From NCBI GenBank assembly GCA_964019335.1, contig OZ025738.1:186001-250000 (forward strand): a DNA stretch of 64,000 nt, written 5' to 3'. A program made the translations under genes and the position numbers. The notes beneath the pieces are model-generated. The model was not told the origin of the DNA, ran no database searches, and saw only the letters and a program-made list of their open reading frames with translations. Positions 1 through 61,672 of this stretch are shown piece by piece (the stretch's first letter is position 1; each line of letters starts with the position of its first letter). This stretch comes from Diplonema japonicum. Lineage: Eukaryota; Protista; Euglenozoa: Diplonemea.

Positions 1-150
1 GCCCCCTGTAATCAAGTAAATGGTGCTTGTGCAGGGTGCCCCCACCGGCTTCCTTTAAATCATCGAGTTTTCTTTCTTTCTCTTATTCACAACACAAGAA
101 AAAACAAGAAAACATCTATATCCCGTCACGGGGGGCAAAGATGCTACAAC

Positions 151-9542: not shown

Positions 9543-10539
9543 TTTCTTTTTTTTTTTCCGATTTTCACTTTTTCACTTTTTCTTATTATAGAAACCTGGC
9601 CAAGGTGTGCCTCTCGAAGCTCGAAAAAGAAAGGTGGGAAAAAAAGTTCGCTTTTTTCTTTTTCTTCCCTTTCTTCTTTTTCGTTTGAACTTAGTAAGCC
9701 AGCTGCACATCCCGCCTTCTTGAGAAACTCGGCCCGAACATCACGAGGGTCATCCCGGTGCGGCTTCTTTGTCCACCAACATTTCGTGTTGGTCGTCCGA
9801 TGGTGCCCCGTGAGGCGTCCGCACTGGTCTGATTCATTTTCTTTAAAAAGGTTTGCTATTCTTTTTCTGTGTATCAGCCCACCCACCTTTCTCTTTTCTT
9901 TTCTTCTTTTTTTGGGGGAAAGTACTGATGGATCAAAGTGATGGATCAAAAGTGATGGATCAAAGTAGGAAAAAAGAGGTAAGAAAAAAGAAAAAAGAAA
10001 GTCAAGCGACTGGCACCTTCCGAAGAAGGGCCTCCCACGTCCGCCGGGTTGAGCAGAGGATGCCGGGGGTAGGGGGAAACATTTGATAATTGGATACCGT
10101 GTGGTCTTCTCACCCCTGGCCGGTATTGGACCTTCTGAAAAGTCCTTCTGTCCCAAAAGGGGGGAAAGAAGAAGAAGGAGAAGCTCCAGTCTCGGGACAG
10201 CACGTGGGCAGTTGTCCAGTGCCAATGAATGGGATGGGGATGAAACTACGGGGGAGCCGGGATGGTCAGGACTTACTTTGCAGGACTTCCAATACCATGT
10301 GGTCCTCTCACCCCTGGCCGGTATTGGACCTTCTGAAAAGTTCTTTTGTACCCAAAAAGGAGGAAAGAAGGAGAAGAAAGTTAAATACTGTAAAACGCGA
10401 GCTGAGAAAAATATCCGGGCTTCTTTTTCGCTTCTGGGAGTTTGTCACTCTGGCAACTTTCTCTCCGGAATCTTTCGTTTACAGTGATCTTTCTTTTTTT
10501 TAAAATTCCACTTCCAGTTTTAAAAAAAAAAATATATGA

Positions 10540-34875: not shown

Positions 34876-34949
34876 GACTGACATCCTCAAGAGGAGCCTC
34901 CCACGTACCAGGAATTAAGCAGAGGTTGCTTCCATGGCCCGTATCAGTC
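34876..34949 (-). ncRNA. Structured RNA motif, type 2 (PLE family 2 3' region)
   Basis: GACUGA/UCAGUC closing stem, a long hairpin with loop ACCUC, a GGGAGG junction and a UCCU-CUUG-AGGA hairpin. Other copies at 36845-36918 and 50583-50656; partial copies at 23070-23093 and 56437-56477. Confidence 0.75.
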
Positions 34950-36734
34950 TATCGCCGGAAAGAATAATGAAAATAACGGAACGAAGTGAAAAAGGAAAAG
35001 AGAAAAGACGGCCTGGTCGCCAGGAAGTGCTGGTTCAGACGCGTCGGCGGACTCCTAGGTGCAGGGCACAGCCCTCCCAACTAGACCACCCTGGTCTTCG
35101 AAAACATTTTCCGCTGAACTACTGGTCAGGAAGATTTAAAGGGAAGAGTGCCCAGGTGCAAAAGTTTGGCAAAAATGGCCAAAACTCAAAATGGCGACTT
35201 CCAAGGTCATTTTGGTTGGCCCCCAAAAAACTTTTTTTGGAAAATCCTTTTTGGAACTTCCTTGGAACTCACCGTTCTCTCATGACATATGGATTTTTTG
35301 AAAAAAAAAATTCAATGAACCTTTGAGCATTTTTGACATTTTTTCCCCTATAGCCCCCTATAACCCCTTTGGGACATAGGGCAGGTCACTTAGCGAATAT
35401 AGAAGGTAAATAAAAATAAAATTCACTATGATAGGAACGAAGTGGTTAGCAACGGCCCGCCCATAAAAACCCATAAAAAGAACAAGCCAAATTCGGCACA
35501 TGACCGGAAAGACTGTTTCCGGAAGCTTTCTTCTTTTTTCTTTCTTGGCACTAACCACCTCGTGAAATCGCCAAAATAAAGCACCAATATCATTGTTTCG
35601 TAGATACTCCCTTCTGTTTGGACACGTCACAAAGACCTCGTTCTTCTTAAAGATAATGCGCTTTCCGTAAGGGCATAAGTTCTTCTGTTTTCGATCGATT
35701 GTGAGTCATATCTGGTGTGTACTGTTCCACGGCGTGTTGTTGAAGTCGAGGATGAGGGCGAACCGGACAAACCTCATGTGATCTCCGAGCTCCTCCGTGG
35801 TTTTAGGCTCCTCGCCGGGCATGTGCTTGCAGATTCTTCCTTCGCGGGCTCTGCTTGCCATTCGACGGTGTCGATGTACTTCGGCCTGGCCGCTTTGGCT
35901 TGCAGGGCATTCTAGGAGAAGGTGTTAGAGGTTGTGGGTGTTTTTTTTTTTTTTTTTTTAAATTGGGGTTTTCTTCTTTTATTCTTTTTTTAAATCAGAC
36001 ACAGATGTGCTTTTTGTTCTTTGAGTGACGCTTCATGTGAAAGAAGACCTGTGCAGGTTTGGCAGGGGTGGCTATTACCTGAACCTTTCCTCCTTTGCAA
36101 GTGCGCTGCTCGTAGTTGTCCTTCAACAGCTCAATGAAGCTCAGCAATGGAAAGATTGGTCAGCGAACTCAAGCAATACTAGTATGACGCTTCCTTAGCT
36201 TTTGTGTCCAGCTGCTCCGCACGGGGGGCCCAGTTTTGCGTTGCTACCCAAACTCTCTCCCGTCTTCCATCCGAACTATTTTTTCTTTCTTTTATATATA
36301 ACTCATAATACGCACTGTTGCTCTTGGGACGCTTCTTGGACCTGTGCCCTCACACGCATGTAGGCTCTTCATCTTCTTTTTACGGCGAGCAACCACCCGC
36401 ACACCGAAATTTATCAAATTTTACTTTTTCTCGGTCCTATTTTTTCTGTTTTGTGTTTTTACTGTGTGTTTGTTACGAAAGGGTTGAAAATAAAAAAATA
36501 AAAAAAAAAAACAGACTCAAAATATTCAGAAAAAAAAAAAAAAAAAAAAGAAAAGAAAGAAAAGGAAGGAAATGACTTAGTTTACTTCAAATAAAACCGC
36601 CCACATTTGTTTTCCTGTTTTCTTTCTTTTGTTTTCTTTTTCCCTAACTTGCATCACGAAGTCTAACATTGGGGGAAATGGGCGGGTTTTGGGGGGGTTG
36701 CCATCCTTAGATGTGGTTGCGCTTCTCAGGCACC

Positions 36735-36955
36735 TGAAATGATTTTAAGTTAGAATAGAGAAGCGAAAAAATAGATAAAAAGGGGTGGAAAAGAATAAAT
36801 ACTGCATACGAAAACAGAGAGTCGAATAAAAAAGGGAAAAAGGTGACTGACATCCTCAAGGGGAGCCTCCCACGTACCAGGAATTAAGCAGAGGTTGCTT
36901 CCATGGCCCGTATCAGTCTATCGCCGGAAAGAATAATGAAAATAACGGAACGAAG
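36735..36955 (-). mobile_element. 5'-truncated retrocopy of the PLE family 2 3' end with a 17-bp target-site duplication
   Basis: Matches 50472-50696; flanked by TGCGCTTCTCAGGCACC at 36718-36734 and 36956-36972. Confidence 0.85.
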
Positions 36956-39148: not shown

Positions 39149-40006
39149 TTATTCTTCTGTTATTCTTACCCCCGATGGTACCTTAGTCTTTAACCTGTTA
39201 AAAGTATCAGTGCCTCCTCTCAAAACGATGGTTTCTAGATTTTCGCAGCCAACCAAGAAGCTAGAACCAATAGAAGAAAGATTGGTCATCACGTTCAAGT
39301 TAACGGTTTTTAGATTGTCACACCATGGCAAGAAGTAAGAACCGATGGACTCAAGATTGGTCATTGAACTCAAGTCGATGGTTTCTAGATTGTTGCACCC
39401 AACCAAGAAGCCATGGCCAATGGAATTAAGATTGGTCATCGCATTCAAGTCGATTACTTTTAATCTTGGGCACCCTTTTAAAAAGAAATTATGAATGGTA
39501 GAAACATTGGGGAGGATGAGTTCAACAGACGTCAGGTGGTCGCAATCTCGAAGAAACTCATCGCCTATCCTTGTAACACAGCCTGTGGAGTCGGTGACAA
39601 CGAGGAACCGAAGTCCAGAAGGAAGGACCGTCGTCTTCATGGACAAGACTTCGACAGCTGGAGAGTTCCCCACCTCCACCACAAGAACCAGCTCAGGGTC
39701 AGCTGACAAAAGACCTTGAAGCTCAGAAACCACTTCTGAGTTCTCGTCCTTTAGCTCCTCCAGACGAACGGTTCTCATCTTCGCCTCCACATGGACCACG
39801 GAGCCCTCCACGAGCCCAACTTCCTGAAGCTCTTCACCACCTTTCCTGTCAAGGACCTCACCCTCCCAAACCAGTTTGAACTTGCCTTCGAGTAAGTTTG
39901 TGGCACAGGCCACCTTCTTGTACAGGCTCCCCACCGTCTCCTTCCCCGACACTTCCACATCGTGAACCCCGCCTCCTGTCTTCACGAACACTGTCATATC
40001 GTTCAT
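39149..40006 (-). CDS. Ubiquitin-like + LRR protein, 285 aa
   Basis: Intact ORF, same family as 19559-20728. Confidence 0.9.
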   Translation of the reverse strand: MNDMTVFVKTGGGVHDVEVSGKETVGSLYKKVACATNLLEGKFKLVWEGEVLDRKGGEELQEVGLVEGSVVHVEAKMRTVRLEELKDENSEVVSELQGLLSADPELVLVVEVGNSPAVEVLSMKTTVLPSGLRFLVVTDSTGCVTRIGDEFLRDCDHLTSVELILPNVSTIHNFFLKGCPRLKVIDLNAMTNLNSIGHGFLVGCNNLETIDLSSMTNLESIGSYFLPWCDNLKTVNLNVMTNLSSIGSSFLVGCENLETIVLRGGTDTFNRLKTKVPSGVRITEE

Positions 40007-40559: not shown

Positions 40560-43500
40560 TTATAATCTCTGTATACTTACCCCCGATGGCACCTTAGCCT
40601 CGAAGAGCTTGTTAAGATTTTCAGTGTCCCCTCTCAAAACAAATGGTTTTTAGTCTTTTGCACTCATACAAAGGGTTATCACCAATGGAAGAAAGATTCA
40701 TCACATTCAAGTCTATGGTTTCTAGTGTTTCGCACCCTAACAAGAAGCCATCACCAATAGAAGAAAGATTGGTCATTGAACTTAAGTCGATGGTTTCTAG
40801 TTCGTAGCAGCGAGACAAGAAACCATCACCAATGGAAGATAGATTGGTCATCGAACTCAAGTTGATGGTTTCTACTTCATCGCACATAAATAAAAAGTTG
40901 TGACCAAAGGTAGAAACATTGGGGAGGATGAGTTCAACAGACATCAGGTGGTAGCAATATTGAAGAAACTCATGGTCTATACTTGGATGGGCTGGGAACC
41001 GAAGCCCAGAAGGAAGGTCCTTCCAGCTCATGGACAAGACATCGACAGCTGGAGAGTCCCCCACCTCCACCACAAGAACCAGCTCAGGGTCAGCTGACAC
41101 AAGACCCTCAAGCTGGTTGCAGCGATGACAGGAGCGCACAACGAGCTCTCGAGCCTCCTAAAAGCTGTACAACGCACCCTGCACGAGAAGGACCTGGAGT
41201 TCCGAAGCAAGGAGGTGAATCCGGGCCTCAGCGGAGTACGCCGCTTCTGGATCGTGGAATCAGCTGAGCAGGTCGCGGCTGAGATCAAACAGCGGTACAC
41301 GTTTTTCAAGTCGAAGGTCCCCGCCACCTACGACTTTAAAACGATGTACTCCAACCTGGACCAGGGACTCCTTCGAAAGGGCCTGGGCAGAGCAATCCGC
41401 GAAGCCTTCGAGCACGCCGGGAAGGAGCTGGTGATAAACAAGAGCGGAAGTAGCTTCGCGGATGCAGAAGACGACGACAAAGTGTACTCCCTCTCGATGG
41501 TGGAGGAACTAGTCGAATTCGTCGTTGACAACGCGTACGTCGAGCAAGGCGGCCGTGCTCTGCGCCAGGTGCGGGGCATACCGATGGGCGGCAACGCGTC
41601 TCCGGATATAGCGAACCTATACTGCTATTCCGTCGAAGCCGACTACATCGACGGCTTGATCGAGAACAAGGACTGGGGCCGTCTCAAGGAGTTATGCTCA
41701 GCCGCCCGCTACATCGACGACTTTTTGGTTTGGGACACGACCCCCCCACCCGAAGAGCTGTACGGGATGTCCTACGCCAAGACGTCGGACAACGACGACG
41801 ACGTTCCGTTCATCGGCATGCGGATCACGGCACGAAACGCCGAAAAACAACTGGGTACGCTTGTCAGTCTATGACAAGGCTGCGAACTGGAAGTTCAAGC
41901 CCACGCGTTTCACACACGGGCACACAGCAGCTCCCTCAACACAGGGCCCAGGTATCCTGAAGGGCATGATGCAGCAAGCGCTTTGCCTCACCAACAGCTC
42001 ATCGGACTTCAAGAGGCAAATTGCAAAGACATACTTCAGTTTGCGCGATCGAGGGCACGAGCACAAACTCCTGAACCGAGCATTCCACGAGTTCCTTTGT
42101 GAGCGCGTCAACAAGAACTACGGCTGGGAGAAAGGGGAGCTCCAAAGTTTCTTTACCAGGTCTATGACCACCTTCAGATTTCTCTGTGCCTCATCGGTCC
42201 CCCGTGGGGCAGGTCTCGCTGACTGAGGATGGGGGTCGTCGTCTGTTTGCGTCGACTCCGTGGGTGGTGGCTCCAGCATGTACATGTCCCCCTGTGGGGG
42301 AGGAGGAGGTTCCGTCGCAGCAGTCAAATCCGCGGGTGGCTCCAGCATGTACATGTCTCTGCTGTGCTGTGTCAGCTCCGGCATGTACAGGTCGTCTGTA
42401 GCCGACAGACCGGCCACTTCTCCCAAGATACCCTATCCCTTGCCTGCCAAAAGATCCTTGGCGAAGAGGCCTCGCTGCAGAGCGTGGTCAAGAGCGGACG
42501 GTACCCAGTTCTGGTAATCGGCCCGCCGAAAGGCTCCAGGACGGGCCACTGGACTACAGCCATCAAAACCGGCAGGTCGTGGTACACCGTGATGGACACA
42601 GACAAGGAAGAACACCGTGTCAATGGACTGAGGCAGGTCCTACGTATGTATGACGAACAGAACATCCTGGGTATCACCGAAGAAAGCTGGGCCAGAGCAA
42701 GGACTTTAAGGGAGCAGAACGGCGGCAGACCAAAAGCGTTCGACGTCCACGCTTGCATCAAGGGAGCGCAGGACGAGGTAATGCCACCGGTTTCAGGCCC
42801 CTGTTTGAGCCAGACCCCTGCAGCTAGCCTCACCCCCAATGATGACCCGGTCCCTTCACCTGGTCCGGACTCAGACGCTAATCCGGTCCACAGCATTGAC
42901 CCGACCCCCGTTGCAGACCCGGTCCATACATCTGGCCCGGTCTCCGTCATGGACCCGGCCCCAACGGCTAATCCGGTCGCGGACTCGGTCCCCGCGACTA
43001 AACCGGTCGCGAACACGGCCCCCGTCACGAACCCGGTCCCCGCGACTAGCCCAATCGCTGACCCGGTCCTCATCACAGACCCAGTTACCGCAGCTAGCCC
43101 GATCACGGACCCGGCCCTCGTCACGGACCCGACCCGAGCTAACCCAGTCACAGACACGGCCCCCGTCGCAGACAACCAGCCCAGTCGCTGACCCGGTCCC
43201 CGTCACGGACCCGGTCCCCGCATCTGGCCCGGTCGCAGACACGACCTACATCACAGACGCGATCCCCGAAACCAGCTTAGTCGTTGACCCGGTCCCTGCA
43301 AGTAACCCAGTCGCTGACCCGGTCCTCACCACAGACCCGGTCGCAGACACGGCCCCTGCCACAGATCCAGTCCCCGCAACCAGCCCAGTCGCTGACCCGG
43401 TCCCCGTCACAGACCCGGTCCCCGCAGCTAACCCGGTCCCTGTCACGGACCCGGCCCCCACAACCAACCCGGTTGGAGACACGGCCCCCATCACAGACCC

Positions 43501-45994
43501 GGTCAGCCCAGTCGCTGACCCGGTCTCCGCAAATAGCCCGATCGCTGACCCGGTCCCCGTCACGGATCCGGTCCCCGCATCTGGCCCGGTCTCGATAGTC
43601 CATGACAACCCAGTGCCCACAACTGGCCCAGTCTACGCCACGGACCTAGTCAGTTCGCCTGGCCCGATCTCTGTCACGGACGCAGTCCCCACCACAGGCC
43701 CGGTCCACGCTTCTAGTCCGATCCCCTCCGCAGACCCGGTTCCTACATCAGGCGCAGCCTCCACCAGAGACCCGGTCCCCGCGTCTGACCCGGTCCTCGC
43801 CTCGGACCCGTTACCCGAAGCTGATGCCCTCCCCGTTACAGACCCAGTCCCCGTGCAGATGGACCTGTCTGAACCTCTGGGGCAGCATGGATCGACGACA
43901 TGGGTGCAACCCGAGCCCTCAACGGAGGCGGTCGCCCCACCACCCCTCTCGACGACAGCGGAGCCCTGGGTGCCGTTAGCTCTGACGACGATGTCGCAAC
44001 GACAGATGCAAAGCAGTAGCAGGACTGCGTCAGGACGGGGCACTTCTACTTCTCCTCCTTCTTTTTCTGCTTCTTCTTCTTTTACGCGGACAACGACGAC
44101 TGTCCATCAGAGTCTGCTGTGGACCGATGTCCCGGGGCACCAACGAGGTCGTGGGGGCATCACGAGAGGTCGTGGGGGCATCACGAGAGGTCGCACGTCA
44201 AGCCCCGGATCACAACCGGGACGCGCACACAGCGCAACGACCGCGTGTTTCCCTCGCACCCCAGAACGATTCTCACCCCTGGCCGGTCTGTCGGCTACAG
44301 ACGACCTGTACATGCCGGAGCTGACACAGCACAGCAGAGACATGTACATGCTGGAGCCACCCACGGATTTGACTGCTGCAACGGAACCTCCTCCTCCCCC
44401 ACAGGGGGACATGTACATGCTGGAGCCACCACCCACAGAGTCGACGCAAACAGACGACGACCCCCATCCTCAATCAGCGAGACCTGCCCCACGGGGGACC
44501 GATGAGGCACAGAGAAATTTGAAGGTGGTCATAGACCTGACCGGTGACGACGACGTGGCCTCTGCCCCAATCTCGACCCCGACATCGATAAAGACAGAGC
44601 CTACACCACAGGAGGCACAAGGAAATGAAAGGGTGGTCATAGACCTGACTGGCGACGACGGCGACAAAGTCTCTGCCCCGACCTCGACCCCGCCATCGGA
44701 AACGGCGGAACCTGCGCCACGGACGGAGGAGCTGGAACTGGCATGCCTCACTACCCACGACGGCGACGAAGCCCCAGCCCCGGCCCCGCCCCTCGCAAGC
44801 CACCACAAGAAGAAGCGAAAGGGAGGCACATGCCCGGACGTGTACCTTGGCCACGACACCAAGCTGGTAAGGACCAGCACAGATCGTGCACCAGAGCCAC
44901 CTCTGCTCGTCAAATGGCGGTCCAAGAGCGCGAAGCGCGGGCAGTTGTGCGACGGACAAGCGGAGCCCGCAAAGAAGAAAGACCGCTTGGACCTCCTCAG
45001 GGCGAACCGACGGTCGGGCAAGGCCGCCGTTCACGCCCTGGCTGAAGAACATCGAGCGGGTCTGGAAGATAAGCTCTCCCACACGAAACTGGCGACGGCC
45101 GGGATCGTCGAAGCGGAAGGGGAGTGGACGCCAGAAGCCATGATACGGGTCTGCAAACACGTGCTCGGCGAAGAGCCTAAAACCGCGAAGGAACTCGGGA
45201 TTCACATGAAGTTTGTCCGGTTCGCCCTCATCCTGGACTTTGACAAGACGTGGATCATGGCCAGGTATGACTCGGAAGGCTGGAAGGCGAAGGGGGACGT
45301 CGAGAGACGGCAGCAGTTCACGCGGCACGGAGATATGAGAGCCTTGAAGGATCACTACTTCGTGGCCACTGACTGGCTGTTCTTCACCACGCTGCAGTGG
45401 CATAATGTGGGACAGCGCCACCCCCCAAGAACCACGAAGACCTTACGCAAGTAAGAGTGCTGGCCCGGCGAGCTACGAGGGCAAAAAACCTCATTTCTCC
45501 TTGGAGATGAGAACATATATTATAGTGCGACATGATCAGACTGGAACGGCCGCCCCGGGGAGGCCCTTCTTCGGAAGGTGCCAGTCGCTTGATCAGTGTC
45601 GTCGAATGCGCGCTATATTTTATATTTTATAAGTACATATAACAATCGATTGAAAGAAGAAGAACGTTTACCAAAAGATCCTCAAGCTCAGAAACCACTT
45701 CTGAGTTCTCGTCCTTCAGCTCCTCCAGACGAACAGTTCTCATCTCCGCCTCCACATGGACCACGGAGCCCTCCACGAGCCCAACTTCCTGAAGCTCTTC
45801 ACCACCTTTCCTGTCAAGGACCTCACCCTCCCAAACCAGTTTGAACCTGCCTTCGAGTAAGTTTGTAGCACGCCCTGCCTTCTTGTACAGGCTCCTGAAA
45901 TGATTTTAAGTTAGAATAGAACCGCCTCCTTCCCCGACACTTCCACATCGTGAACCCCGCCTCCCGTCTTCACGAACACTGTCATATCGGTCAT
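40560..45994 (-). pseudogene. Ubl-LRR gene split by a PLE insertion (5' half 45994-45680, 3' half 41114-40560)
   Basis: The two halves are colinear with intact paralogues once 41115-45674 is removed. There is an extra ~28-nt insertion at 45894-45921. Confidence 0.85.
41115..45674 (+). mobile_element. Penelope-like retroelement family 1, 5'-truncated, with a 14-bp TSD
   Basis: RT motifs YDFKTMYSNL, GIPMGGNASPDIANLY, RYIDD and PFIG; PLE-type thumb VYDK...RGH (frameshift at ~41870); TSD AAGA(C/T)CCTCAAGCT at 41101-41114 and 45675-45688. Confidence 0.85.
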
Positions 45995-48933: not shown

Positions 48934-50151
48934 CTAAACACCGACTTTTCTTTTTAAATGCAAGTCGACAGTTTCTACTTTTACGCACCCCTCCAAGAAG
49001 CGATCACCAATAGAAGAAAGATTGGTCAACGTATTCAAGTCGACAGTTTCTACTTTTACGCACCCTTCCAAGAAGCCATTACCAATGGAAGAAAGATTGG
49101 TCATCGCATTCAAGTTGATGGTTTCTAGTTTTACGCACCCAAACAAGAAGCCATTACCAATGGAAGAAAGATTGGTCATCGCATTCAAGTTGATGGTTTC
49201 TAGTTTTACGCACCCAAACAAGAAGCCATTACCAATGGAAGAAAGATTGGTCATCGCATTCAAGTTGATGGTTTCTAGTTTTTCGCACCTAAACAAGAAG
49301 CCATTACCAATGGAAGAAAGATTGGTCATCGCATTCAAGTTGATGGTTTCTAATTTTACGCACCCATGCAAGAAGTAATTACCAATTGAAGAAAGATTGG
49401 TCATCGCATTCAAGTTGATGGTTTCTAGTTTTACACACCCTTCCAAGAAGTAATCATCAATGGAAGAAAGATTGGTCATCGCATTCAAATCGATGGTTTC
49501 TAGTTTTTCGCACCCAGACAAGAAGTTATGACCAATGGAAGAAAGATTGGTCATCGCATTCAAGTTGATGGTTTCTAGATTTTCGCACTCATTTAAAAGA
49601 TTTTCATCAATGGTGGAAACATTGGGGAGGATGAGATCAACAGACGTCAGGTGGTCGCACTCTTCAAGAAACCTAGAGCCTATACTTGTAACACAGCCTG
49701 TGGAGTCGGTGACAACGAGGAACCGAAGTCCAGAAGGAAGGTCCGCCGTCTTCATGGACAAGACTTCGACAGCTGGCGAGTTCCCCACCTCCACCACAAG
49801 AACCAGCTCAGGGTCAGCTGTCACAAGCTCCTCAAGCTCTGAAACCACTTCTGAGCTCTCAAGCTCCTCCAGCTGAACGGTTCTCATCTTCTTCGCCTCC
49901 ACATGGACCACGGAGCCCTCCACGAGCCCGAGTTCCTGGATATCTTCACCCCCGTTCCTGTCCAGGACCTCACCCTCCCAAACTAGTTCGAACTTGCCTT
50001 CGAGTAAACCAGCAGCACACCCCGCCTTCTTGTACAGGATCCCCACCGTCTCCTTCCCCGACACTTCCACATCGTGAACCCCGCCTCCCGTCTTCACGAA
50101 CACTGTCATATCATTCACCTCTTCACCTGATCCCTCTCTCTTTCCATTCAT
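48934..50151 (-). CDS. Ubiquitin-like + LRR protein with near-identical 66-nt repeats; family C-terminus replaced
   Basis: Open ORF; LNAMTNLSSIG.. repeated about 9 times. Confidence 0.85.
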   Translation of the reverse strand: MNGKREGSGEEVNDMTVFVKTGGGVHDVEVSGKETVGILYKKAGCAAGLLEGKFELVWEGEVLDRNGGEDIQELGLVEGSVVHVEAKKMRTVQLEELESSEVVSELEELVTADPELVLVVEVGNSPAVEVLSMKTADLPSGLRFLVVTDSTGCVTSIGSRFLEECDHLTSVDLILPNVSTIDENLLNECENLETINLNAMTNLSSIGHNFLSGCEKLETIDLNAMTNLSSIDDYFLEGCVKLETINLNAMTNLSSIGNYFLHGCVKLETINLNAMTNLSSIGNGFLFRCEKLETINLNAMTNLSSIGNGFLFGCVKLETINLNAMTNLSSIGNGFLFGCVKLETINLNAMTNLSSIGNGFLEGCVKVETVDLNTLTNLSSIGDRFLEGCVKVETVDLHLKRKVGV

Positions 50152-50471: not shown

Positions 50472-53400
50472 CTGAATGATTTTAATTTAGAGTAGAGAAG
50501 CGAAAAAATGGGTAAAAAGGGGTGGAAAAGAGTAAAAACTGCATACGAAAACAGAGAGTCGAATAAAAAAGGGGAAAAAAGTGACTGACATCCTCAAGAG
50601 GAGCCTCCCACGTACTAAGAATTAAGCAGAGGTTGCTTCCATGGCCCGTATCAGTCTAACGCCGGAAAGAATAATGAAAATAACGGAACGAAGTGAAGTA
50701 GGAAAAGAGAAAAGACGGCCTGGTCGCCAGGAAGTGCTGGTTCAGACGCGTCGGCGGACGCAGTTTAACGTCATACCCGGGACCGAAAACACATAGGAAA
50801 AGGAAAGAGCAGAAAGGGTAATAACAACAAGTTTAAAATTGGAAAGAAAATGGAAAGGGTGGAAACTAAATAATAGGGTGCGAGGTCTGTGAAACCTTGC
50901 ATAGCCTATCGCCTCGTAGCACGCCGGGCCGGCACTCCTACAATGTGTAGGGTTGTTTCCGATTGTTCCTAGTTGTAGGAATGCAGGACAGTCGACCACT
51001 GCGACTCGTTGTAATAGAGGGTCCCGGCCCCTACAAAGTCAGCGAGCAGGGCTGCCACGGTCGAGTAGGACTTGTCCCCGAACCCCTGGGTTTGCAGCAG
51101 AAAGCCCTGTTCCTGGCGGGATGCGTAGTGCCACGTCGAGCCGTGACAGACCAGCAGGCACGGGATCACAACCCGTGTGTCGGGGGGGACCGCGACCAGG
51201 GGGGCCTCACCCAAGAAGTGAGTGCACGCCCTGGACATGCAATTGGGGTCAAAATTGGCCTCGCCCTTGGAAAGAAAGCCCAGATGCCGAAGCTCATCCA
51301 GGTCCTCAGGGCCGTCGACGCCTGCATCCTTGGTGAGCCTCCGAAGGGCGACGAGCCCAGTGATCCTGGTTTTCGGCCGCGTCGCTGCGAGATCTCGCTT
51401 GGCCGCGGGGAGTGCGGGACCGTCCTCGGGCTCCGGGCGTTTGTTCCTCTGTGCGTTGTAGGTGATCAGGAGAGGGGTTTTCCCCGAAGGTCTAGCTTTA
51501 TCGCCTCCTGGGGTCTCGGAGTCAAAGAGCGGGTGCTTCCATCCACCTTGGGCGAACGACCACCACTGTTGCTGCACCGGGGTGTTCGGTCCCGAGTGCC
51601 ACTCGTGAGACAGCCGGAGACGCTCGGACTCAGGCAGTGCGTTGTGCGCAGTCACAAGTAGTTGCTCTTGGTTGGCGACAGTCACTTGTTGGTCGGTAGT
51701 TCTGACCGCGTCACGAGCCTCGAGCAGCAGTTGATGTGGAGGGGTGTCCAGGTGCTTCGGGAGGGACCCGACCGCCAGGATCCGTCTCTGGTGTTCGTCC
51801 AAGAGCTCCGGTCGTTGTCGGAAGTAGACCAAGAGACTGAGGTAGCGGTCCATCCGTCTCTGGAGGAGCCTTTCGGTCGAGGGCATCCTGGTCAAGGCCC
51901 TGGGACTGCTCGCGAAGGATGAGAAGCCCTTCGTCGTCGGTGGATGTAGAACTCTTACCACGACGGCTTTCGTGCTCGTATGCAGTGCCGTCGTGCTTCT
52001 TCTTACGCGAGGGTTTGTCCGGGGAGTCCTGCGTGAGGTCGATCACCTCTGGGGCCCCACTTGTTTGAGGAGGGTCAAGGGGGGGCAACTCTCTCGGTTC
52101 GGGCAACGGGCGCCTCCAGGGTCAGTGTTTGGACGCCGACCGCCGGTTGGAGTGTCGCGTGTCCCATGCCGGGAGGCATCGGCGTGTCAATCCCGAGCCC
52201 GATGTCCTGATGGGCGGACTGGGTGCATACCGTAAGCTGGGCGGCCCCAGGGACCGTCACTAGGGCTCCAATCGTCTGGTGGATGCCCAGGGGGCCCCCT
52301 GCCGAATCGGGCGTCGTCGCCTCGACTCGGACTAGAGATGGCTCCGCAGCCGACGTCGATTCCCTCTGGGTGCTAATAACCGGTTGGAGTGTCGCGTGTC
52401 CCATGCCAGACGGCATCGGTGTGTCAAACCCGTGCCCGGTGCAGACCGCGAGCTCAGAGGGTGCCACGCTCGTTGATGGCGGCTGGCACGGTGTCAACTG
52501 CGGCCCAGCATTCGTCCGTCTCAGCAGAGTCACGCGGGGTGTAGAGGCTGCAAGCGATCGCGGTTCTGTAGCCTCCGAAACCGGCCTGGCCGAGGTCGCA
52601 GGCGTCCTCAGTTCTATGGACCTTGTGAATAGCCTGACCTCTGGTGAAACGGGTGTCTGCAGTTCTGCCGACTTCGTGAAAAGCTTGATCGGCGCGGCCA
52701 CGGGCGTCCTCAATTTCGCGTATATTGGGGACAGCTTGCTACTAAGAGGGGATGTCTGGAGGGCTACGGAAGACGAGAACAGCACAGGTGTTGCGGTCGG
52801 GTCCGTCTGACAGGCTGCGACTGCTATCTGTGGCGCAGACTTCCGCAAACTTGCGACCTTCGGGAAAAGTGGGATCGTTCCAACTAAGTCTGTCTGGCTC
52901 GCCGCAGATGTGGTGGCGACAGAGCATCCGGTGTGCACAGCCCGGGCGGCCACAGCGGCAACTAGGGTCACGAAGGTTATGGCGACGGGACGCTCGATGT
53001 GAGCGGTGTGTGTAGTCATAGATGGAGCGGCGGCTGTCGTGTCAGACCACGTGCGAAGCCGTGGTACATCTTCTGAATCTCTTGCATTGTAGAGAAGGGG
53101 ATGCGGTCTACCCCGGCATACTCTGCCAACCAGTTTATGACGGCCCAACCGCATTCCAGGCCCCAACGACCCTCCCCACTTTTGTTGTGCAGGTCGATGG
53201 GGGGCGCAAACACCTGATCCGCGGCATCGGATGGTGAGACCACGGAGGCTGCTCGGGGTAGTGTCCGTCCAGCTAAACCTGAAGAGCTATCCGAGGAGCT
53301 GCCTGAGGAACCACCAAAGGGCTTGCCTGAGGGGCCGTCCGTGGAGTCGCCTGAGGAACCAGCCGAGGGGTTGTCCGGGATGCGGATCCCGATAAAGGGG

Positions 53401-53760
53401 ACGTCGCACGAGTCGGATGAGGTCTTTACATATGCCATGCCGTAGAGATCCTCTGGAGGTGGCGCAGTGCTCCACAACAGGAAGTCGTCGATGTAGCGAC
53501 ACGCGTTGCAGAAGCGCTTCAAGGTCTCCCAGTCCTCTTCGGCAAGGAGTTTGTCGATGTACGCGGCCTCCACGGCGTAGCAGAACAGGTTCGCCAGGTC
53601 CGGGGAGGCATTCCCGCCCATGGGAATGCCTTTTACTTGACGAACAGCACGGCGTAGTCTATCCTCGATGCACAGTTCTTCCGAGTGAAGGTTGGCATCG
53701 GGTCTTCCTCCTTTCCCGCGTGCGCATGCTCCTGCCGCATCAGTCCATCCGTTCACCAGC
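50472..53760 (-). mobile_element. Penelope-like retroelement family 2, internally deleted and frameshifted
   Basis: RT motifs GIPMGGNASPDLANLF, RYIDD and PFIG (53016-53756); low-complexity linker; EVIDLT; C-terminal domain homologous to family 1; 3' UTR repeated throughout the window. Confidence 0.8.
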
Positions 53761-54962: not shown

Positions 54963-56256
54963 TTATAATTTCTGTATACTTACCCCCGATGGCACCTTAG
55001 CCTCGAAGAGCTTGTTAAGATTTTCAGTGCCTCCTCTCAAAACGATGGTTTTTAGTCCTTTGCACTCAGATAAGAAGTAATCACCAATGGAAGAAAAATC
55101 CATCACATTCAAGTCTATGGTTTCTAGTGTTTTGCACCCTAACAAGAAGCCATCACCAATGGAAGAAAGATTGGTCATTGAACTTAAGTCGATAGTTTCT
55201 AGCTTGTTGCAGTAAGACAAGAACCATGACCTATGGAATAAAGATTGGTCATCGAACTCAAGTTGATGGTTTTTAGTTCGTGCACTGAGACAAGAAGTCA
55301 TCACCAAGAGAAGAAAGACTGATCGTTGAACTCAAGTCAATGGTTTTTAGTCTGTAGCACTGAGACAAGAAACCATCACCAATGGAAGATAGATTGGTCA
55401 TCGAACTCAAGTTGATGGTTTCTAGTTCGTTGCAGGAAGACAAGAAGCCATTACCAATAGAAGAAAGACTGATCGTTGAACTCAAGTCGAAGGATTTTAG
55501 TCTGCTGCAGTAAGACAAGAAACCATCACCAATTGAAGATAGGTTGGTCATCGAACTCAAATTGATGGTTTCTAGTTCGTAGCAGTGAGACAAGAAGCCA
55601 TCACCAAGAGCAGAAAGACTGATCGTTGAACTCAAGTCAATGGTTTTTAGTCCGCAACCAGACAAGAAACCACGACCAATGGAAGATAGATTGGTCATCG
55701 AACTCAAGTTGATGGTTTCTAGTCTTTCGCACTTAAATAAAAAGTCATCACCAATGGTAGAAACATTGGGGAGGATGAGTTCAACAGACGTCAGGTGGTC
55801 GCACACTGTAATAAACTCATCGTCTAAACTTGTAACACGGCCTGTGGAGTCGGTGACAACGAGGAACAGAAGTCCAGAAGGAAGGTCCGCCGTCTCCATG
55901 GACAAGACTGTAGAGTCCCCCACCTCCACCACAAGAACCAGCTCAGGGTCAGCTGACACAAGACCCTCAAGCTCAGAAACCACTCCTGAGTTCTCGTCCT
56001 TCAGCTCCTCCAGACGAACGGTTCTCATCTTCGCCTCCACATGGACCACGGAGCCCTCCACGAGCCCAACTTCCTGAAGCTCTTCACCACCTTTCTTGTC
56101 AAGGACCTCACCCTCCCAAACCAGTTTGAACTTGCCTTCGAGTAAGTTTGTGGCACAGGCCACCTTCTTGTACAGGCTCCCCACCGCCTCCTTCCCCGAC
56201 ACTTCCACATCGTGAACCCCGCCTCCCGTCTTCACGAACACTGTCATATCGTTCAT
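54963..56256 (-). pseudogene. Ubl-LRR gene with a frameshift near 55230-55300
   Basis: Two overlapping ORFs give a full family-type protein; could be a pseudogene or a sequencing error. Confidence 0.75.
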
Positions 56257-57459
56257 TTTCTTTTTTTTTGGTTGTGTTTCTGTTCTGTTAAAGGTGATTT
56301 TCAATCTTCAAAGGCAAATCAATAGGTGGCTGAAAATGATATAAAGTAAAAAAGTTGAAATAATAAAAAAGAATAAATATATGAGTTAAAAGGAAGTCTT
56401 TGTGAGACGCCCCTTGTTCTCATGCTCTATAAAAGTGACTGACATCCTCAAAGAGGAGCCTCCCACGTACCAGGAATCTTGGTGCGGGCTCCTATAAAGA
56501 AGTGAAAAGAAAAGACGAAAAAAAGAGACGCAAAAAACGCAAAAATGTGTGAAAAGAGAAAAGAAGCTTCAATAAACGGCCCGTATACTTACTTACTCCT
56601 GCAGGTATCTGAGCCTCTAAGAGCTTCTTAAAAGTTTCAGTGCCTCCTCTCAAAACGATGGTTTCTAGTTTTTCGAAAGATTCATCACATTCAGGTTTCG
56701 CATCCCAACAAAGAGCCATAACCAATAGAATAAATATTTGTTAGTGATCATCCCTGTCGTCGGAGGGTCCTCTTACCCACTACCTGCAAACACAAGGTCC
56801 GGACCAAAGCTTGGTTGGCTATTATGCGTTGCAATGCGGTTTCGTCCTGCCTCGTCGTGTCTTGCGGCCCTAGGGTACAAAGCCTCTTGTTAGTCCGCAG
56901 CCCGGTGTTTGGAAAGGGAGTCAACCACAATGCACAGGTAGGCATGGTCAGATTTGTTTGTGAGCAGATGAAAAAAAAGGGGGGGGGGTTTTTTTTGCAA
57001 GTTCCTTTTGGAAAATATTAGCGAAACATAACAAAAAGGGGTAAAAACCAAAACGGATTGTATCAGGAACTCATTTTTTGAAACTATGGAAAGAAACGTA
57101 AAAAAAGAGATGAGATAAAGGAGGTTCCTGTTTTGGAACGTCCCCCTTGTCTCTACTTATCTACCCCTTTCTCCCTTCTGGGGCCTCGGCCTTTCTTTCT
57201 TTTTTGGCTGTGTTGCCTTTCTCAAAGTATCCTCCCTTTCTTCTTGCCACTTTCTGCCCAGTTTCTTAAGGTCCTTCTTGGTTTTCTCTGATGCAAAAAC
57301 TGCCTTCTGTTCCATCCCAGACTCTTCTTCGCACCTATGGTTCTAAGCGCGTGGTTCTTCTTGCTCTCCGCTGGGAAGATCCGCTTGCCTCTGACCTTCT
57401 TCTGTATGCGTGCTGTGTCCCACCCTTCTTGGATTCTTTCCAGGAGGCCGTGGAAACTC

Positions 57460-60296
57460 CTTTGGTAAACGTTCTTCTTCTTTCAATCGATTGTTATATG
57501 TACTTATAAAATATAAAATATAGCGCGCATTCGACGACACTGATCAAGCGACTGGCACCTTCCGAAGAAGGGCCTCCCACGTCCGCCGGGTTGAGCAGAG
57601 GATGCCCCGGGGCGGCCGTTCCAGTCTGATCATGTCGCACTATAATATATGTTCTCATCTCCAAGGAGAAAAGAGGTTTTTTGCCCTCGTAGCTCGCCGG
57701 GCCAGCACTCTTACTTGCGTAAGGTCTTCGTGGTTCTTGGGGGGTGGCGCTGTCCCACATTATGCCACTGCAGCGTGGTGAAGAACAGCCAGTCAGTGGC
57801 CACGAAGTAGTGATCCTTCAAGGCTCTCATATCTCCGTGCCGCGTGAACTGCTGCCGTCTCTCGACGTCCCCCTTCGCCTTCCAGCCTTCCGAGTCATAC
57901 CTGGCCATGATCCACGTCTTGTCAAAGTCCAGGATGAGGGCGAACCGGACAAACTTCATGTGAATCCCGAGTTCCTTCGCGGTTTTAGGCTCTTCGCCGA
58001 GCACGTGTTTGCAGACCCGTATCATGGCTTCTGGCGTCCACTCCCCTTCCGCTTCGACGATCCCGGCCGTCGCCAGTTTCGTGTGGGAGAGCTTATCTTC
58101 CAGACCCGCTCGATGTTCTTCAGCCAGGGCGTGAACGGCGGCCTTGCCCGACCGTCGGTTCGCCCTGAGGAGGTCCAAGCGGTCTTTCTTCTTTGCGGGC
58201 TCCGCTTGTCCGTCGCACAACTGCCCGCGCTTCGCGCTCTTGGACCGCCATTTGACGAGCAGAGGTGGCTCTGGTGCACGATCTGTGCTGGTCCTTACCA
58301 GCTTGGTGTCGTGGCCAAGGTACACGTCCGGGCATGTGCCTCCCTTTCGCTTCTTCTTGTGGTGGCTTGCGAGGGGCGGGGCCGGGGCTGGGGCTTCGTC
58401 GCCGTCGTGGGTAGTGAGGCATGCCAGTTCCAGCTCCTCCGTCCGTGGCGCAGGTTCCGCCGTTTCCGATGGCGGGGTCGAGGTCGGGGCAGAGACTTTG
58501 TCGCCGTCGTCGCCAGTCAGGTCTATGACCACCCTTTCATTTCCTTGTGCCTCCTGTGGTGTAGGCTCTGTCTTTATCGATGTCGGGGTCGAGATTGGGG
58601 CAGAGGCCACGTCGTCGTCACCGGTCAGGTCTATGACCACCTTCAAATTTCTCTGTGCCTCATCGGTCCCCCGTGGGGCAGGTCTCGCTGATTGAGGATG
58701 GGGGTCGTCGTCTGTTTGCGTCGACTCTGTGGGTGGTGGCTCCAGCATGTACATGTCCCCCTGTGGGGGAGGAGGAGGTTCCGTCGCAGCAGTCAAATCC
58801 GCGGGTGGCTCCAGCATGTACATGTCTCTGCTGTGCTGTGTCAGCTCCGGCATGTACAGGTCGTCTGTAGCCGACAGACCGGCCAGGGGTGAGAATCGTT
58901 CTGGGGTGCGAGGGAAACACGCGATCGTTGCGCTGTGCGCGCGTCTCGGTTGTGATCCGGGGCTTGACGTGCGACCTCTCGTGATGCCCCCACGACCTCG
59001 TTGGTGCCCCGGGACATCGGTCCACAGCAGACTCTGATGGACAGTCGTCGTTATCCGCGTAAAAGAAGAAGAAGCAGAAAAAGAAGGAGGAGAAGTAGAA
59101 GTGCCCCGTCCTGACGCAGTCCTGCTACTGCTTTGCATCTGTCGTTGCGACATCGTCGTCAGAGCTAACGGCACCTAGGGCTTCGCTGTCGTCAAGAGGG
59201 GTGGTGGGGCGACCGCCTCCGTTGAGGGCTCGGGTTGCACCCATGTCGTCGATCCGTGCTGCCCTAGAGGTTCAGACAGGTCCATCTGCACGGGGACTGG
59301 GTCTGTAACGGGGAGGGCATCAGCTTCGGGTAACGGGTCCGAGGCGAGGACCGGGTCAGACGCGGGGACCGGGTCTCTGGTGGAGGCTGCGCCTGATGTA
59401 GGAACCGGGTCTGCGGAGGGGATCGGACTAGAAGCGTGGACCGGGCCTGTGGTGGGGACTGCGTCCGTGACAGAGATCGGGCCAGGCGAACTGACTAGGT
59501 CCGTGGCGTAGACTGGGCCAGTTGTGGGCACTGGGTCGTCATGGACTATCGAGACCGGGCCAGATGCGGGGACCGGATCCGTGACGGGGACCGGGTCAAC
59601 AATCGGGCTATTTGCGGGGACCGGGTCAGCGACTGGGCTGACCGGGTCTGTGATGGGGGCCGTGTCTCCAACCGGGTTGGTTGTGGGGGCCGGGTCCGTG
59701 ACAGGGACCGGGTTAGCTGCGGGGACCGGGTCAGCGACTGGGCTGGTTGCGGGGACTGGATCTGTGGCAGGGGCCGTGTCTGCGACCGGGTTAGCCGTGG
59801 AGACCGGGTCTGTGGTGAGGACCGGGTCAGCGACTGGGTTACTTGCAGGGACCGGGTCAATGACCAAGCTGGTTTCGGGGATCGCGTCTGTGATGTGGGT
59901 CGTGTCTGCGACCGGGCCAGATGCGGGGACCGGGTCCGTGACGGGGACCGGGTCAGCGACTGGGCTGGTTGTGGGGACCGGGTCTGCGACGGGGGCCGTG
60001 TCTGTGACTGGGTTAGCTCGGGTCGGGTCCGTGACGAGGGCCGGGTCCGTGATCGGGCTAGCTGCGGTAACTGGGTCTGTGATGAGGACCGGGTCAGCGA
60101 TTGGGCTAGTCGCGGGGACCGGGTTCGTGACGGGGGCCGTGTCCGCGACCGGTTTAGTCGCGGGGACCAGTCCGCGACCGGATTAGCCGTTGGGGCCGGG
60201 TCCGTGACGGAGACCGGGCCAGATGTATGGACCGGGTCTGCAACGGGGGTCGGGTCAATGCTGTGGACCGGATTAGCGTCTGAGTCCGGACCAGGT
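57460..60296 (-). mobile_element. Second 5'-truncated copy of PLE family 1
   Basis: Near-identical reverse complement of ~42857-45674, with the same 3' end (...GAACGTTTACCAAA). Confidence 0.9.
57550..57626 (-). ncRNA. Structured RNA motif, type 1 (PLE family 1 3' region)
   Basis: GACUGG/CCAGUC stem, a hairpin with loop UCCUC, a GGGAGG junction and a CCUUC-UUCG-GAAGG hairpin. Deleted copy at 45539-45586 (+); truncated copy at 10008-10066. Confidence 0.75.
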
Positions 60297-60739
60297 GACC
60301 GTTGCCATCTCTTGTGCCTGCTGCCCGCTCATTTTCTTGTCGTTTGTGTCCCACCCAGCCTTTTTTTTTTTTTTTTTTGATTTTTTTTTTTTTTTTTTTT
60401 AGAATAAGATCTGTTGGTAAAGGTGGTGGTTTTAGAAAGATGGGGGGGGGGGGAGAAAAGAAGATGTAGATCTCTTAATTATTTCCCTTTCAAGAAAAAA
60501 AAAAAATTCTTTGTTTTCTTTCTTTGTGTTTCTGTTCTGTTATTGGCGATTTTCAAATCAATAGGTGGCTGAAGTGATTAAGGAAAAAAAAGAGGAAAAG
60601 AAAACAAAAAAAAAGTAAAAGTGGAAGAAAAGAGAGCTCAGACTGCTGTGAACGGGAGAAAGCACGAAGAACGAATAGAAAAGCGTGCTAGATTTCATAG
60701 ATATCATCTTCCTTCGCACAACAAGTCTTCTTTTTTATT

Positions 60740-61672
60740 CTAATTCTGTATACTTACCCTCTCTGGCACCCAGATCTTTAAGAGCTTGTTAAACGTATCA
60801 GTGCTTCCTTTCGCAATGGTCTTTAGGTTTTTGCAGTCAGACAAGAAGTAATCACCAATGAAAGAAACATTAGTCATTGAACTCAAGTCGATGGTTACTA
60901 GATTGCCACACCCATACAAGAAGCGATTACCAATAGAAGATAAATTGGACATCGCATTCAAGTTGATGGTTTCTAGTTTGTCGCACCCATACAAGAAGCT
61001 ATTACCAATGAAAGAAATATTGGTCATAGAACTCAAGTCGAGGGTTTCTAGATTGCTGCAGCAATACAAGAATTCATCACCAATGGAATTAAGATTGGTC
61101 ATTGAACTCAAGTTGATGGTTTCTAGTCCATTGCACCCTCCTAAAAAGAAACGACGGGTGGCAGAAACATTGGGGAGGATGAGTTCAACAGACGTCAGGT
61201 GGTCGCAATACTGAAGAAACGCAGCGTCTATACTTGTAACACAGCCTGTGGAGTCGGTGACAACGAGGGAGCGAAGTCCAGAAGGAAGGTCTTTCCAGCT
61301 CATGGACAAGACATCGACAGCTGGAGAGTCCCCCACCTCCACCACAAGAACCAGCTCAGGGTCAGCTGACACAAGACCCTCAAGCTCAGAAACCACTCCT
61401 GAGTTCTTGTCCTTCAACTCCTCCAGACGAACGGTTCTTCTCCTGTCCGCCTCCACACGGACCACGGAGCCCTCCACGAGCCCAACTTCCTGAAGCTCTT
61501 CACCGCCGTTCCTGTCAAGGACCTCACCCTCCCAAACCAGTTTGAACCTGCCTTCGAGTAAACCAGCAGCACACCCCGCCTTCTTGTACAGGCTCCCCAC
61601 CGTCTCCTTCCCCGACACTTCCACATCGTGAACCCCGCCTCCCGTCTTCACGAACACTGTCATATCGGTCAT
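60740..61672 (-). CDS. Ubiquitin-like + LRR protein, 310 aa
   Basis: Intact ORF, same family. Confidence 0.9.
   Translation of the reverse strand: MTDMTVFVKTGGGVHDVEVSGKETVGSLYKKAGCAAGLLEGRFKLVWEGEVLDRNGGEELQEVGLVEGSVVRVEADRRRTVRLEELKDKNSGVVSELEGLVSADPELVLVVEVGDSPAVDVLSMSWKDLPSGLRSLVVTDSTGCVTSIDAAFLQYCDHLTSVELILPNVSATRRFFLGGCNGLETINLSSMTNLNSIGDEFLYCCSNLETLDLSSMTNISFIGNSFLYGCDKLETINLNAMSNLSSIGNRFLYGCGNLVTIDLSSMTNVSFIGDYFLSDCKNLKTIAKGSTDTFNKLLKIWVPERVSIQN

Follow-up and report, generated by a model that had tools for sequence, protein, structure and literature searches.

A predicted three-way-junction RNA motif, supported by covariation, near the 3' ends of two Penelope-like element families in Diplonema japonicum

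This analysis concerns a short RNA motif that recurs in a 64-kb stretch of the Diplonema japonicum genome (contig OZ025738.1, positions 186,001 to 250,000; hereafter the window, part of a 62.5-Mb assembly of 132 contigs). The motif lies near the 3' ends of two families of Penelope-like elements (PLEs) and exists in two versions, one per family, here termed type 1 and type 2. The two versions differ at 21 positions, 18 of which are helix positions changed as matched pairs, and no base pair is broken. The motif is tentatively read, with somewhat less than even confidence, as a cis-acting folded RNA module of the pseudo-long terminal repeat (pseudo-LTR) and 3' untranslated region (3' UTR), putatively recognized by an element-encoded protein for target-primed reverse transcription.

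PLEs are the sister group of telomerase reverse transcriptases (RTs), and little is understood of how they move. A hammerhead ribozyme of unclear role is present in every canonical PLE clade, and elements of the Naiad/Chlamys type have been reported without one. A different, strongly constrained fold in the same place raises two possibilities: the pseudo-LTR may need some structured RNA, with catalysis optional, or a new catalytic fold may have taken over, and both are relevant to the question of the hammerhead's purpose in PLEs. The motif offers, in a short sequence, clear sites for disrupt-and-rescue mutations, and the protist that carries it can be cultured and has a published genome.

Fold and covariation of the motif

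Both motif sequences had been written out in an earlier, sequence-only reading of this DNA, and were confirmed by the reverse complements of the two copies concerned (first two rows of Table 1). RNAalifold, applied to the four full copies in the window, returned the same three-way junction as that reading had drawn, with a closing helix (P1), a long arm (P2 and P3) and a further hairpin (P4). A pair-by-pair check on the native sequences gave 24 base pairs that could be compared between types. Nine of these were changed on both sides with pairing kept (one in P1, six in P2, and two in P4), none was changed on one side only, and the 22 comparable unpaired positions carried three substitutions. 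When the 21 substitutions were placed at random, not one of 200,000 trials gave zero broken pairs, the usual number being about ten, and P1, P2 and P4 are for this reason backed by covariation as well as two lineages permit. G.U pairs were found on the sense strand only. The claim of a covarying, structured RNA on the element-sense strand was upheld.

Helix P2 comprises eight pairs in both types, with its bulge offset by one pair (CC vs U), and P4 is capped by UUCG or CUUG, depending on the type. The near-invariant unpaired letters are those of the one-letter junction, the G.A mismatch, the UYAA bulge, the CCUC loop, the GGGAGGC strand, and the UG junction. P2a, P3 and the CCUC and GAGG segments are invariant across types, and are neither backed nor contradicted by covariation. 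The last of these had been proposed to form a pseudoknot. The complementarity exists, but both of its sides are invariant, which leaves it without covariation support, and the contact appears sterically strained. With P2a formed, a linker of 2 nt would have to span an arm of ~15 bp to reach GAGG, so the contact would probably need the arm to fold back at its bulges, or P2a to open. The chance of a four-letter match between a 5-nt loop and a 7-nt strand is a few per cent.

Thermodynamics alone did not single out the fold. Single-sequence z-scores were -0.17 and -0.73. The proposed type 1 fold lies 2.3 kcal/mol over the minimum free energy, with a low pairing probability for P2; that of type 2 is near the energy minimum, with P2 and P3 well populated. 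In type 1 only, the first ~22 nt of the sequence downstream of the motif (the tail) pair with 12 nt upstream of it, and P1 is thereby extended. A coding explanation for the pattern of changes was rejected: an open reading frame (ORF) crosses the type 1 motif in one frame, none crosses that of type 2, and the substitutions follow pairs, not codons.

It is very unlikely indeed that the motif has no function of its own and has been kept merely through the youth of the copies or the exchange of 3' ends between families. Copies within a type are near-identical, with at least 40 letter-perfect whole motifs of each type in the genome, and within type 2 the tail is conserved as well, as would be expected under that explanation. 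However, neither drift nor 3'-end exchange can yield between-type substitutions that fall so largely in the helices, as matched pairs, and break none of them.

Host elements and their 3' modules

The hosts can be assigned to the permuted type of PLE, in which the GIY-YIG nuclease precedes the RT, because at nine or more places Pfam matches to GIY-YIG above the cut-off share the open frame of the RT (up to 2175 amino acids, aa), ~1.6-2.4 kb upstream and so on its N-terminal side. Two diverged host families had been proposed, and this was borne out. The RT fragment of the plus-strand type 1 element (Table 1) matched one family in the genome at 97-98% identity, ~3.7 kb upstream of type 1 motifs, and another at 59-62%, ~3.55 kb upstream of type 2 motifs. 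The RT cores of the two families are ~62% identical, and their C-terminal regions 28% over 174 aa. The nearest protein to the fragment (96% identical) comes from the D. japonicum transcriptome, a match which shows that the type 1 RT is transcribed, followed by proteins of D. papillatum and Flectonema. No description of PLEs, or of this motif, in diplonemids was found in the literature.

The C-terminal regions of these proteins and their relatives show some further features. Two RT relatives, P0003 (from Diplonema papillatum) and P0006, carry a deubiquitinase domain of USP/UCH type (Cys box, His box) after the RT. The C-terminal region of the D. japonicum element looks unlike this domain, and has repeated VVIDLTGDD stretches that look like SUMO-interaction motifs. 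The type 1 ORF also includes a long, low-complexity, proline-/threonine-rich repeat with units of ~48 nt, the length of which differs between the two window copies (Table 1).

In full-length type 2 copies the motif occurs ~1.85 kb upstream of GIY-YIG and again ~3.55 kb downstream of the RT. The pseudo-LTR arrangement that PLEs typically have was seen at L071/L072 (C52), where a 407-nt 3' fragment (motif plus tail) adjoins the 5' end of a full-length type 2 element, and the same junction is present at L048 and L052. The hosts are candidate members of the Naiad/Chlamys group, which is defined also by a CxC linker and an IFD in the RT: their nuclease is N-terminal, and neither the window nor ten loci that span pseudo-LTRs and 5' UTRs yielded a hammerhead. 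Canonical PLE clades have hammerheads in their pseudo-LTRs (PMC4209133), and the group with an N-terminal nuclease has been reported to be without canonical ones (PMC8557442).

From the end of the ORF to the motif is 87 nt in type 1 and ~300 nt in type 2. The distance from motif to 3' terminus, earlier put at ~90-110 nt, is 90 nt in type 1 and 111 nt in type 2. Type 1 copies end ...TTTACCAAG or ...TTTACCAAAG, and a public contig (run X3) departs from the window at 57462, near this terminus. Tails are unrelated between the types, and more than one tail accompanies each motif type; because it is joined to at least five different tails overall, the motif is what stays constant in the 3' module. 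In both types, copies have a variable 5' truncation and a fixed 3' end, and a short type 1 insertion is flanked by a target-site duplication of 15-16 nt. Variable 5' truncation and target-site duplications, across ~190 copies with the motif 90-111 nt from the 3' terminus, constitute the signature of target-primed reverse transcription.

The UTRs around the motif had been described as unrelated between the two families. This did not wholly hold, as a 45-nt segment at or just past the stop codon (block A) is 89% identical between them. Its conservation is one of sequence, without compensatory changes, and type 1 subfamily L023 is without most of it. A comparison of two type 2 subfamilies gave identities of 83% for the ORF end and 77% for the 3' UTR upstream of the motif, while the motif itself was identical at 74 of 74 positions and the tail at 107 of 110. 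At the rate of change of the flanks, an unchanged motif would be expected with a probability of 5e-7. Because motif and tail are near-identical while the flanks are at 77-83%, the terminal module of type 2 is constrained or else was recently exchanged, with the motif not separated from the tail; what does single it out is the comparison of type 1 with type 2.

The type 2 tail resembles an intron end or trans-splice acceptor, with GTATGC, a long pyrimidine tract and CCTAAC, followed by CATTTCAG. At most of the 42 type 2 loci, NNRCCY directly follows the CAG at which the copy ends, and in full-length composites the upstream pseudo-LTR ends in CAG/TTGCCTCTAAC (the slash marks the junction), the latter being the 5' end of the full-length element. 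In a polycistronic, trans-spliced genome, the pseudo-LTR may supply either the element or the gene that comes next with a spliced-leader acceptor. The motif itself could serve RNA metabolism independently of the RT, through exonuclease resistance, stability or nuclear export, or as a signal for 3'-end formation or splicing near the tail, but this is distinctly unlikely. It does lie within the 3' UTR, and the acceptor-like tail downstream of it in type 2 implies RNA processing close by. Three-way junctions with a possible contact between loop and junction are also, in broad terms, like the compact folds of exonuclease-resistant RNAs (xrRNAs). The type 1 tail, however, has no acceptor-like features and yet retains the motif, no Rfam match to any xrRNA or transport-element family was obtained, and a role in retrotransposition would be the simpler account of its tight link to the 3' module that is retrotransposed.

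Four type 2 loci (L034, L035, L043, and L044) carry nested insertions right past the 3' end of the motif (GTCAG/TCACCTTTTCC), accompanied by a ~11-nt duplication. It seems that the elements use the edge of their own motif as a target, and pseudo-LTRs and tandems would arise in this way. In type 1, a 3' module of ~200 nt lies inside another repeat at L001, L011, L019, and L022, with a 15-16-nt target-site duplication, GTATTGTGAGGCTGCT, and the composite was subsequently copied itself. The motif could also act at the DNA level, perhaps as a site that the GIY-YIG nuclease recognizes or homes to, in which case elements would insert beside existing copies and build pseudo-LTRs, an explanation consistent with the type 2 insertions just past its 3' end (GTCAG/TCACC...; ~11-nt duplication) and with the resemblance of that end to the general junction pattern CAG/NNRCCY. 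It is nonetheless quite improbable. A reader of double-stranded DNA gives no reason for nine compensatory changes within a strand, G.U pairs occur on the sense strand alone, and the preferred target is a few bases at the edge of the motif, not the motif.

Known RNA families and the possible role of the motif

Rfam 15 gave no match at the gathering score, either in the window or in the ten pseudo-LTR and 5' UTR loci. With E up to 10, four slices (~100 and ~380 nt) returned only chance fragments of microRNA, small nucleolar RNA, algC and U6 families, and no ribozyme; twister, twister-sister, pistol, hatchet, hairpin and VS gave no match at this level even with permissive filters. These searches do not model pseudoknots, so that for these six classes the negative covers the usual arrangements better than an unusual permutation.

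Individual candidates were rejected from their core letters and topology. For a hammerhead in any block order, CUGGAAC (type 1) and CUGAUAC (type 2) are without G8 and A9, there is no GAAA at any junction, and where a hammerhead needs U-H ahead of the one-letter junction, the motif has G-A or A-U. The reordered hammerheads known as non-circular permutations (PMC10085705) were excluded as well, the core blocks themselves being absent. An HDV-like (hepatitis delta virus) ribozyme does not fit, as the covarying helices are simply nested, without a double pseudoknot, and the closing strand is preceded by UG, without a catalytic C. A selenocysteine insertion sequence (SECIS) was rejected because UGGA in type 1 corresponds to UGAU in type 2, leaving no conserved quartet, and no Rfam SECIS match was found. 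ARAGORN found no tRNA-like structure in 34000-58500. The sequence-only reading had placed the fold outside the hammerhead, HDV-like, twister, pistol and SECIS families and had proposed an Rfam scan; core letters, topology, and the scan, which yielded no significant family match, agree with it, and the motif appears to match no described RNA family.

The PLE hammerheads (Cervera and de la Pena 2014, PMC4209133) are comparable in several respects, as they share with the motif the class of retroelement, the pseudo-LTR site, a similar size, and a three-way junction with invariant strands. The hammerhead core of CUGANGA, GAAA and UH has no counterpart in the motif. Junction strands are 1, 7, and 3 nt long in hammerheads and 1, 7, and 2 nt long in the motif. 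A new class of self-cleaving ribozyme, which would have replaced the hammerhead in the pseudo-LTRs of PLEs with an N-terminal nuclease and would cut read-through or tandem transcripts, is an unlikely but credible reading. Diplonemid genes are transcribed as long polycistrons (PMC10161547), and under such transcription the element RNA must be cut from a longer precursor. The small size of the motif (74-77 nt), its invariant junction letters, and the similar strand lengths would suit a ribozyme, as would its presence on both sides of the ORF domains in full-length type 2 copies. It would also fill a place occupied by hammerheads in canonical clades (PMC4209133) and reported to be without them in the Naiad/Chlamys group (PMC8557442), neither a hammerhead nor any other known ribozyme having been detected in the window or in the ten pseudo-LTR and 5' UTR loci. 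In a more specific form, judged slightly less probable again, the motif would be a new small ribozyme, possibly assisted by protein like the hammerhead of the Poseidon PLE, and would be the long-missing counterpart of the hammerhead, excising element RNA from polycistrons.

Several observations argue against catalysis. The motif has no catalytic core of a known class, and DNA copies extend 90-111 nt beyond it, so cleavage there cannot give the template its 3' end. Copies whose 5' truncation falls within the motif begin at varied positions (~9, 10, 10, 13, 15, 20, 20, 37, and 37), with no pile-up at one site. Across its full length the motif is present, unbroken and unsubstituted, in assembled contigs of three public runs, though as assemblies these are silent on RNA ends and possibly DNA-derived; in one of the three runs the ORF upstream of the motif differs by 7-13%. 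Most conserved structured RNAs in the UTRs of retroelements are not known to be catalytic.

The reading tentatively favored here, recognition by the element's own protein, has a precedent in Poseidon (PAc). In that PLE a defined segment of RNA is needed for insertion in vitro, cleavage by the hammerhead is dispensable, reverse transcription starts internally, and the hammerhead cleaves only with protein present (Frangieh et al. 2024, PMC11167929). The likeness lies in an element RNA, situated in the repeated region, that is required for target-primed reverse transcription, which begins at a set point without homology to the target (PMC11167929). The Poseidon segment lies within the first 172 nt of the ORF and includes the start site, which is placed in an AC-rich stem-loop, whereas the motif lies ~100 nt upstream of the terminus; the two show no sequence likeness, and belong to clades with a C-terminal and an N-terminal nuclease, respectively.

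Other systems offer further parallels. The proposed recognition role would resemble that of the R2 3' UTR, which is structured. There, and in pairs of long and short interspersed elements (LINEs and SINEs) that share 3' stem-loops, the helices covary with a drifting sequence, and the fold is retained in short copies with 5' truncation. As non-LTR elements, these have no likeness to the motif in sequence or fold. HDV-like ribozymes (of R2, L1Tc and others) resemble it in having a 3-bp hairpin with a UCCUC-type loop, the C's of which could pair with a run of G's after a long helix, followed by a hairpin, a short junction and the closing strand; the loop and the G-run recall P3/L3 and P1.1. An HDV fold, however, needs the 5' strand of P1 outside P2, giving the double pseudoknot, while the helices of the motif are nested and there is no junction C. 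Finally, the RTs of PLEs are the closest relatives of the telomerase RT (TERT), which recognizes a three-way-junction RNA (CR4/5 or TWJ). The comparison of the telomerase TWJ with the motif is one of analogy only, with no correspondence in sequence or helices.

Under the recognition reading, the element's own protein would bind the fold, and perhaps block A too; binding would select the element RNA and position the RT for target-primed reverse transcription, which starts where the tail ends. Protein contacts would be made by the loop and the invariant, purine-rich junction, with the helices only a scaffold, and it is proposed that the helices are free to covary for this reason. The position of the motif, its constancy across tails, the Poseidon precedent, and a pattern in which helices vary freely but single-stranded letters are fixed are together suggestive of such a role. 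All but three of the junction and loop letters are the same despite diverged RTs, C-termini and tails, and the contigs from the three public runs pass through the motif unbroken.

A number of points weigh on the other side. Binding of a protein to the motif is putative. An invariant 7-nt junction and invariant loops would be equally typical of a catalytic core, and the motif occupies the pseudo-LTR, the site of the hammerhead in other PLE clades. The RNA required by Poseidon is at the start site of reverse transcription, not ~100 nt upstream, and the conservation of motif and tail in type 2 could reflect a recent exchange of 3' ends instead of selection. The motif is known from two lineages only, within a single genome. 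No homologue was recovered, by covariance model or loose pattern, from 63 metagenomic contigs, many of them too short for a 3' UTR, that encode related RTs at most 47% identical in the best segment. Nor did exact patterns of the motif have any match among contigs of metagenomes, prokaryotic genomes and viruses.

Copies in the genome and neighboring genes

The two copies of the motif listed in the sequence-only reading are real, but the window holds further full, truncated and deleted copies that were not listed there (Table 1). Six of the seven are on the minus strand, as is every gene with a Pfam match. Six occurrences of the 11-nt core ACGTGGGAGGC were counted in the window, all of them on the minus strand, with about one expected by chance. 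Across the genome, exact type-specific cores numbered 82 for type 1 and 106 for type 2, and a reversed-pattern control gave none; the 11-nt core with other flanks was not commoner than its control in the genome, and was without a CCUC partner. A covariance model trained on the four full window copies and run on the genome returned 15,476 candidates. The best 150, which were inspected, were all type 1, type 2, decayed or 5'-truncated, with no third motif type among them, though weaker relatives could be hidden below these. Two motif types are therefore known in this genome.

Individual window copies differ in their surroundings. The type 2 copy at 34876 has an unusually short tail of 12 nt, and the host of the copy at 50583 is a longer, 5'-truncated element extending to an RT fragment (Table 1). 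The deleted type 1 copy sits in an inverted copy that is 100% identical elsewhere, and its form occurs once in the whole genome. The 29-nt deletion, at 45561, was considered as a trace of RT skipping or processing, but this was set aside given the single copy, and it is taken as a one-off deletion.

Table 1. Positions of the motif copies, associated element features and neighboring genes in the window
Feature	Positions	Strand	Remarks
Type 1 motif, full copy	57550-57626	-	77 nt; read as reverse complement
Type 2 motif, full copy	34876-34949	-	74 nt; within a short, 5'-truncated retrocopy
Type 2 motif, full copy	36845-36918	-	P4 with a single T-to-C change that leaves a C.A mismatch
Type 2 motif, full copy variant	50583-50656	-	P2 with one G.U pair and one C.A mismatch
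Type 1 copy, 5'-truncated	10008-10084	-	Similarity begins near motif position 20; different pyrimidine-rich tail
Type 2 copy, 5'-truncated	56437-56475	-	Begins at motif position ~37; another tail variant
Type 1 copy, internally deleted	45539-45586	+	29 nt lost: P3 and the 3' half of P2
P1 (type 1 numbering)	motif 1-6 with 72-77	-	Closing helix
Long arm, type 1			P2a, G.A mismatch, P2b, CC bulge, P2c, UCAA bulge, P3 with UCCUC loop
Rest of type 1 fold			Junction strand GGGAGGC, P4 with UUCG loop, closing junction UG
Type 1 tail	57460-57549	-	90 nt; ends ...TTTACCAAAG; flanks diverge beyond, marking the element 3' terminus
Type 2 tail	36734-36844	-	111 nt; pyrimidine-rich, CTAAC, terminal CATTTCAG; CAG is the exact end of the copy
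Type 2 tail of the copy at 50583	50472-50582	-	111 nt
Block A, type 1	57683-57726	-	45 nt; overlaps the stop codon (57711-57713) and extends ~28 nt beyond it
Block A core, type 2	50910-50936	-	Type 2 counterpart
Block A, plus-strand copy	45456-45482	+	3' UTR block
RT fragment, plus-strand type 1 element	41125-41874	+	YIDDF; weak RVT_1 match; query for full-length copies
RT fragment, host of the copy at 50583	53016-53756		
Type 1 ORF, C-terminal part	57711-59174	-	487 aa; without Pfam match
Proline-/threonine-rich repeat, type 1 ORF	58700-60400	-	
Proline-/threonine-rich repeat, type 1 ORF	42900-44200	+	
Ubiquitin-like/BspA-type genes	7869-9542, 39149-40006, 48934-50151, 55273-56304, 60740-61672	-	Tandem family; ubiquitin-like domain and BspA-type leucine-rich repeats
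ORF with ADP-ribosyltransferase (ART) domain	11741-14647	-	968 aa

Among the other genes of the window, the five members of the tandem family with a ubiquitin-like domain and BspA-type leucine-rich repeats are interleaved with the retroelement copies. The 968-aa ORF carries its ART domain first, followed by a long array of ankyrin repeats.

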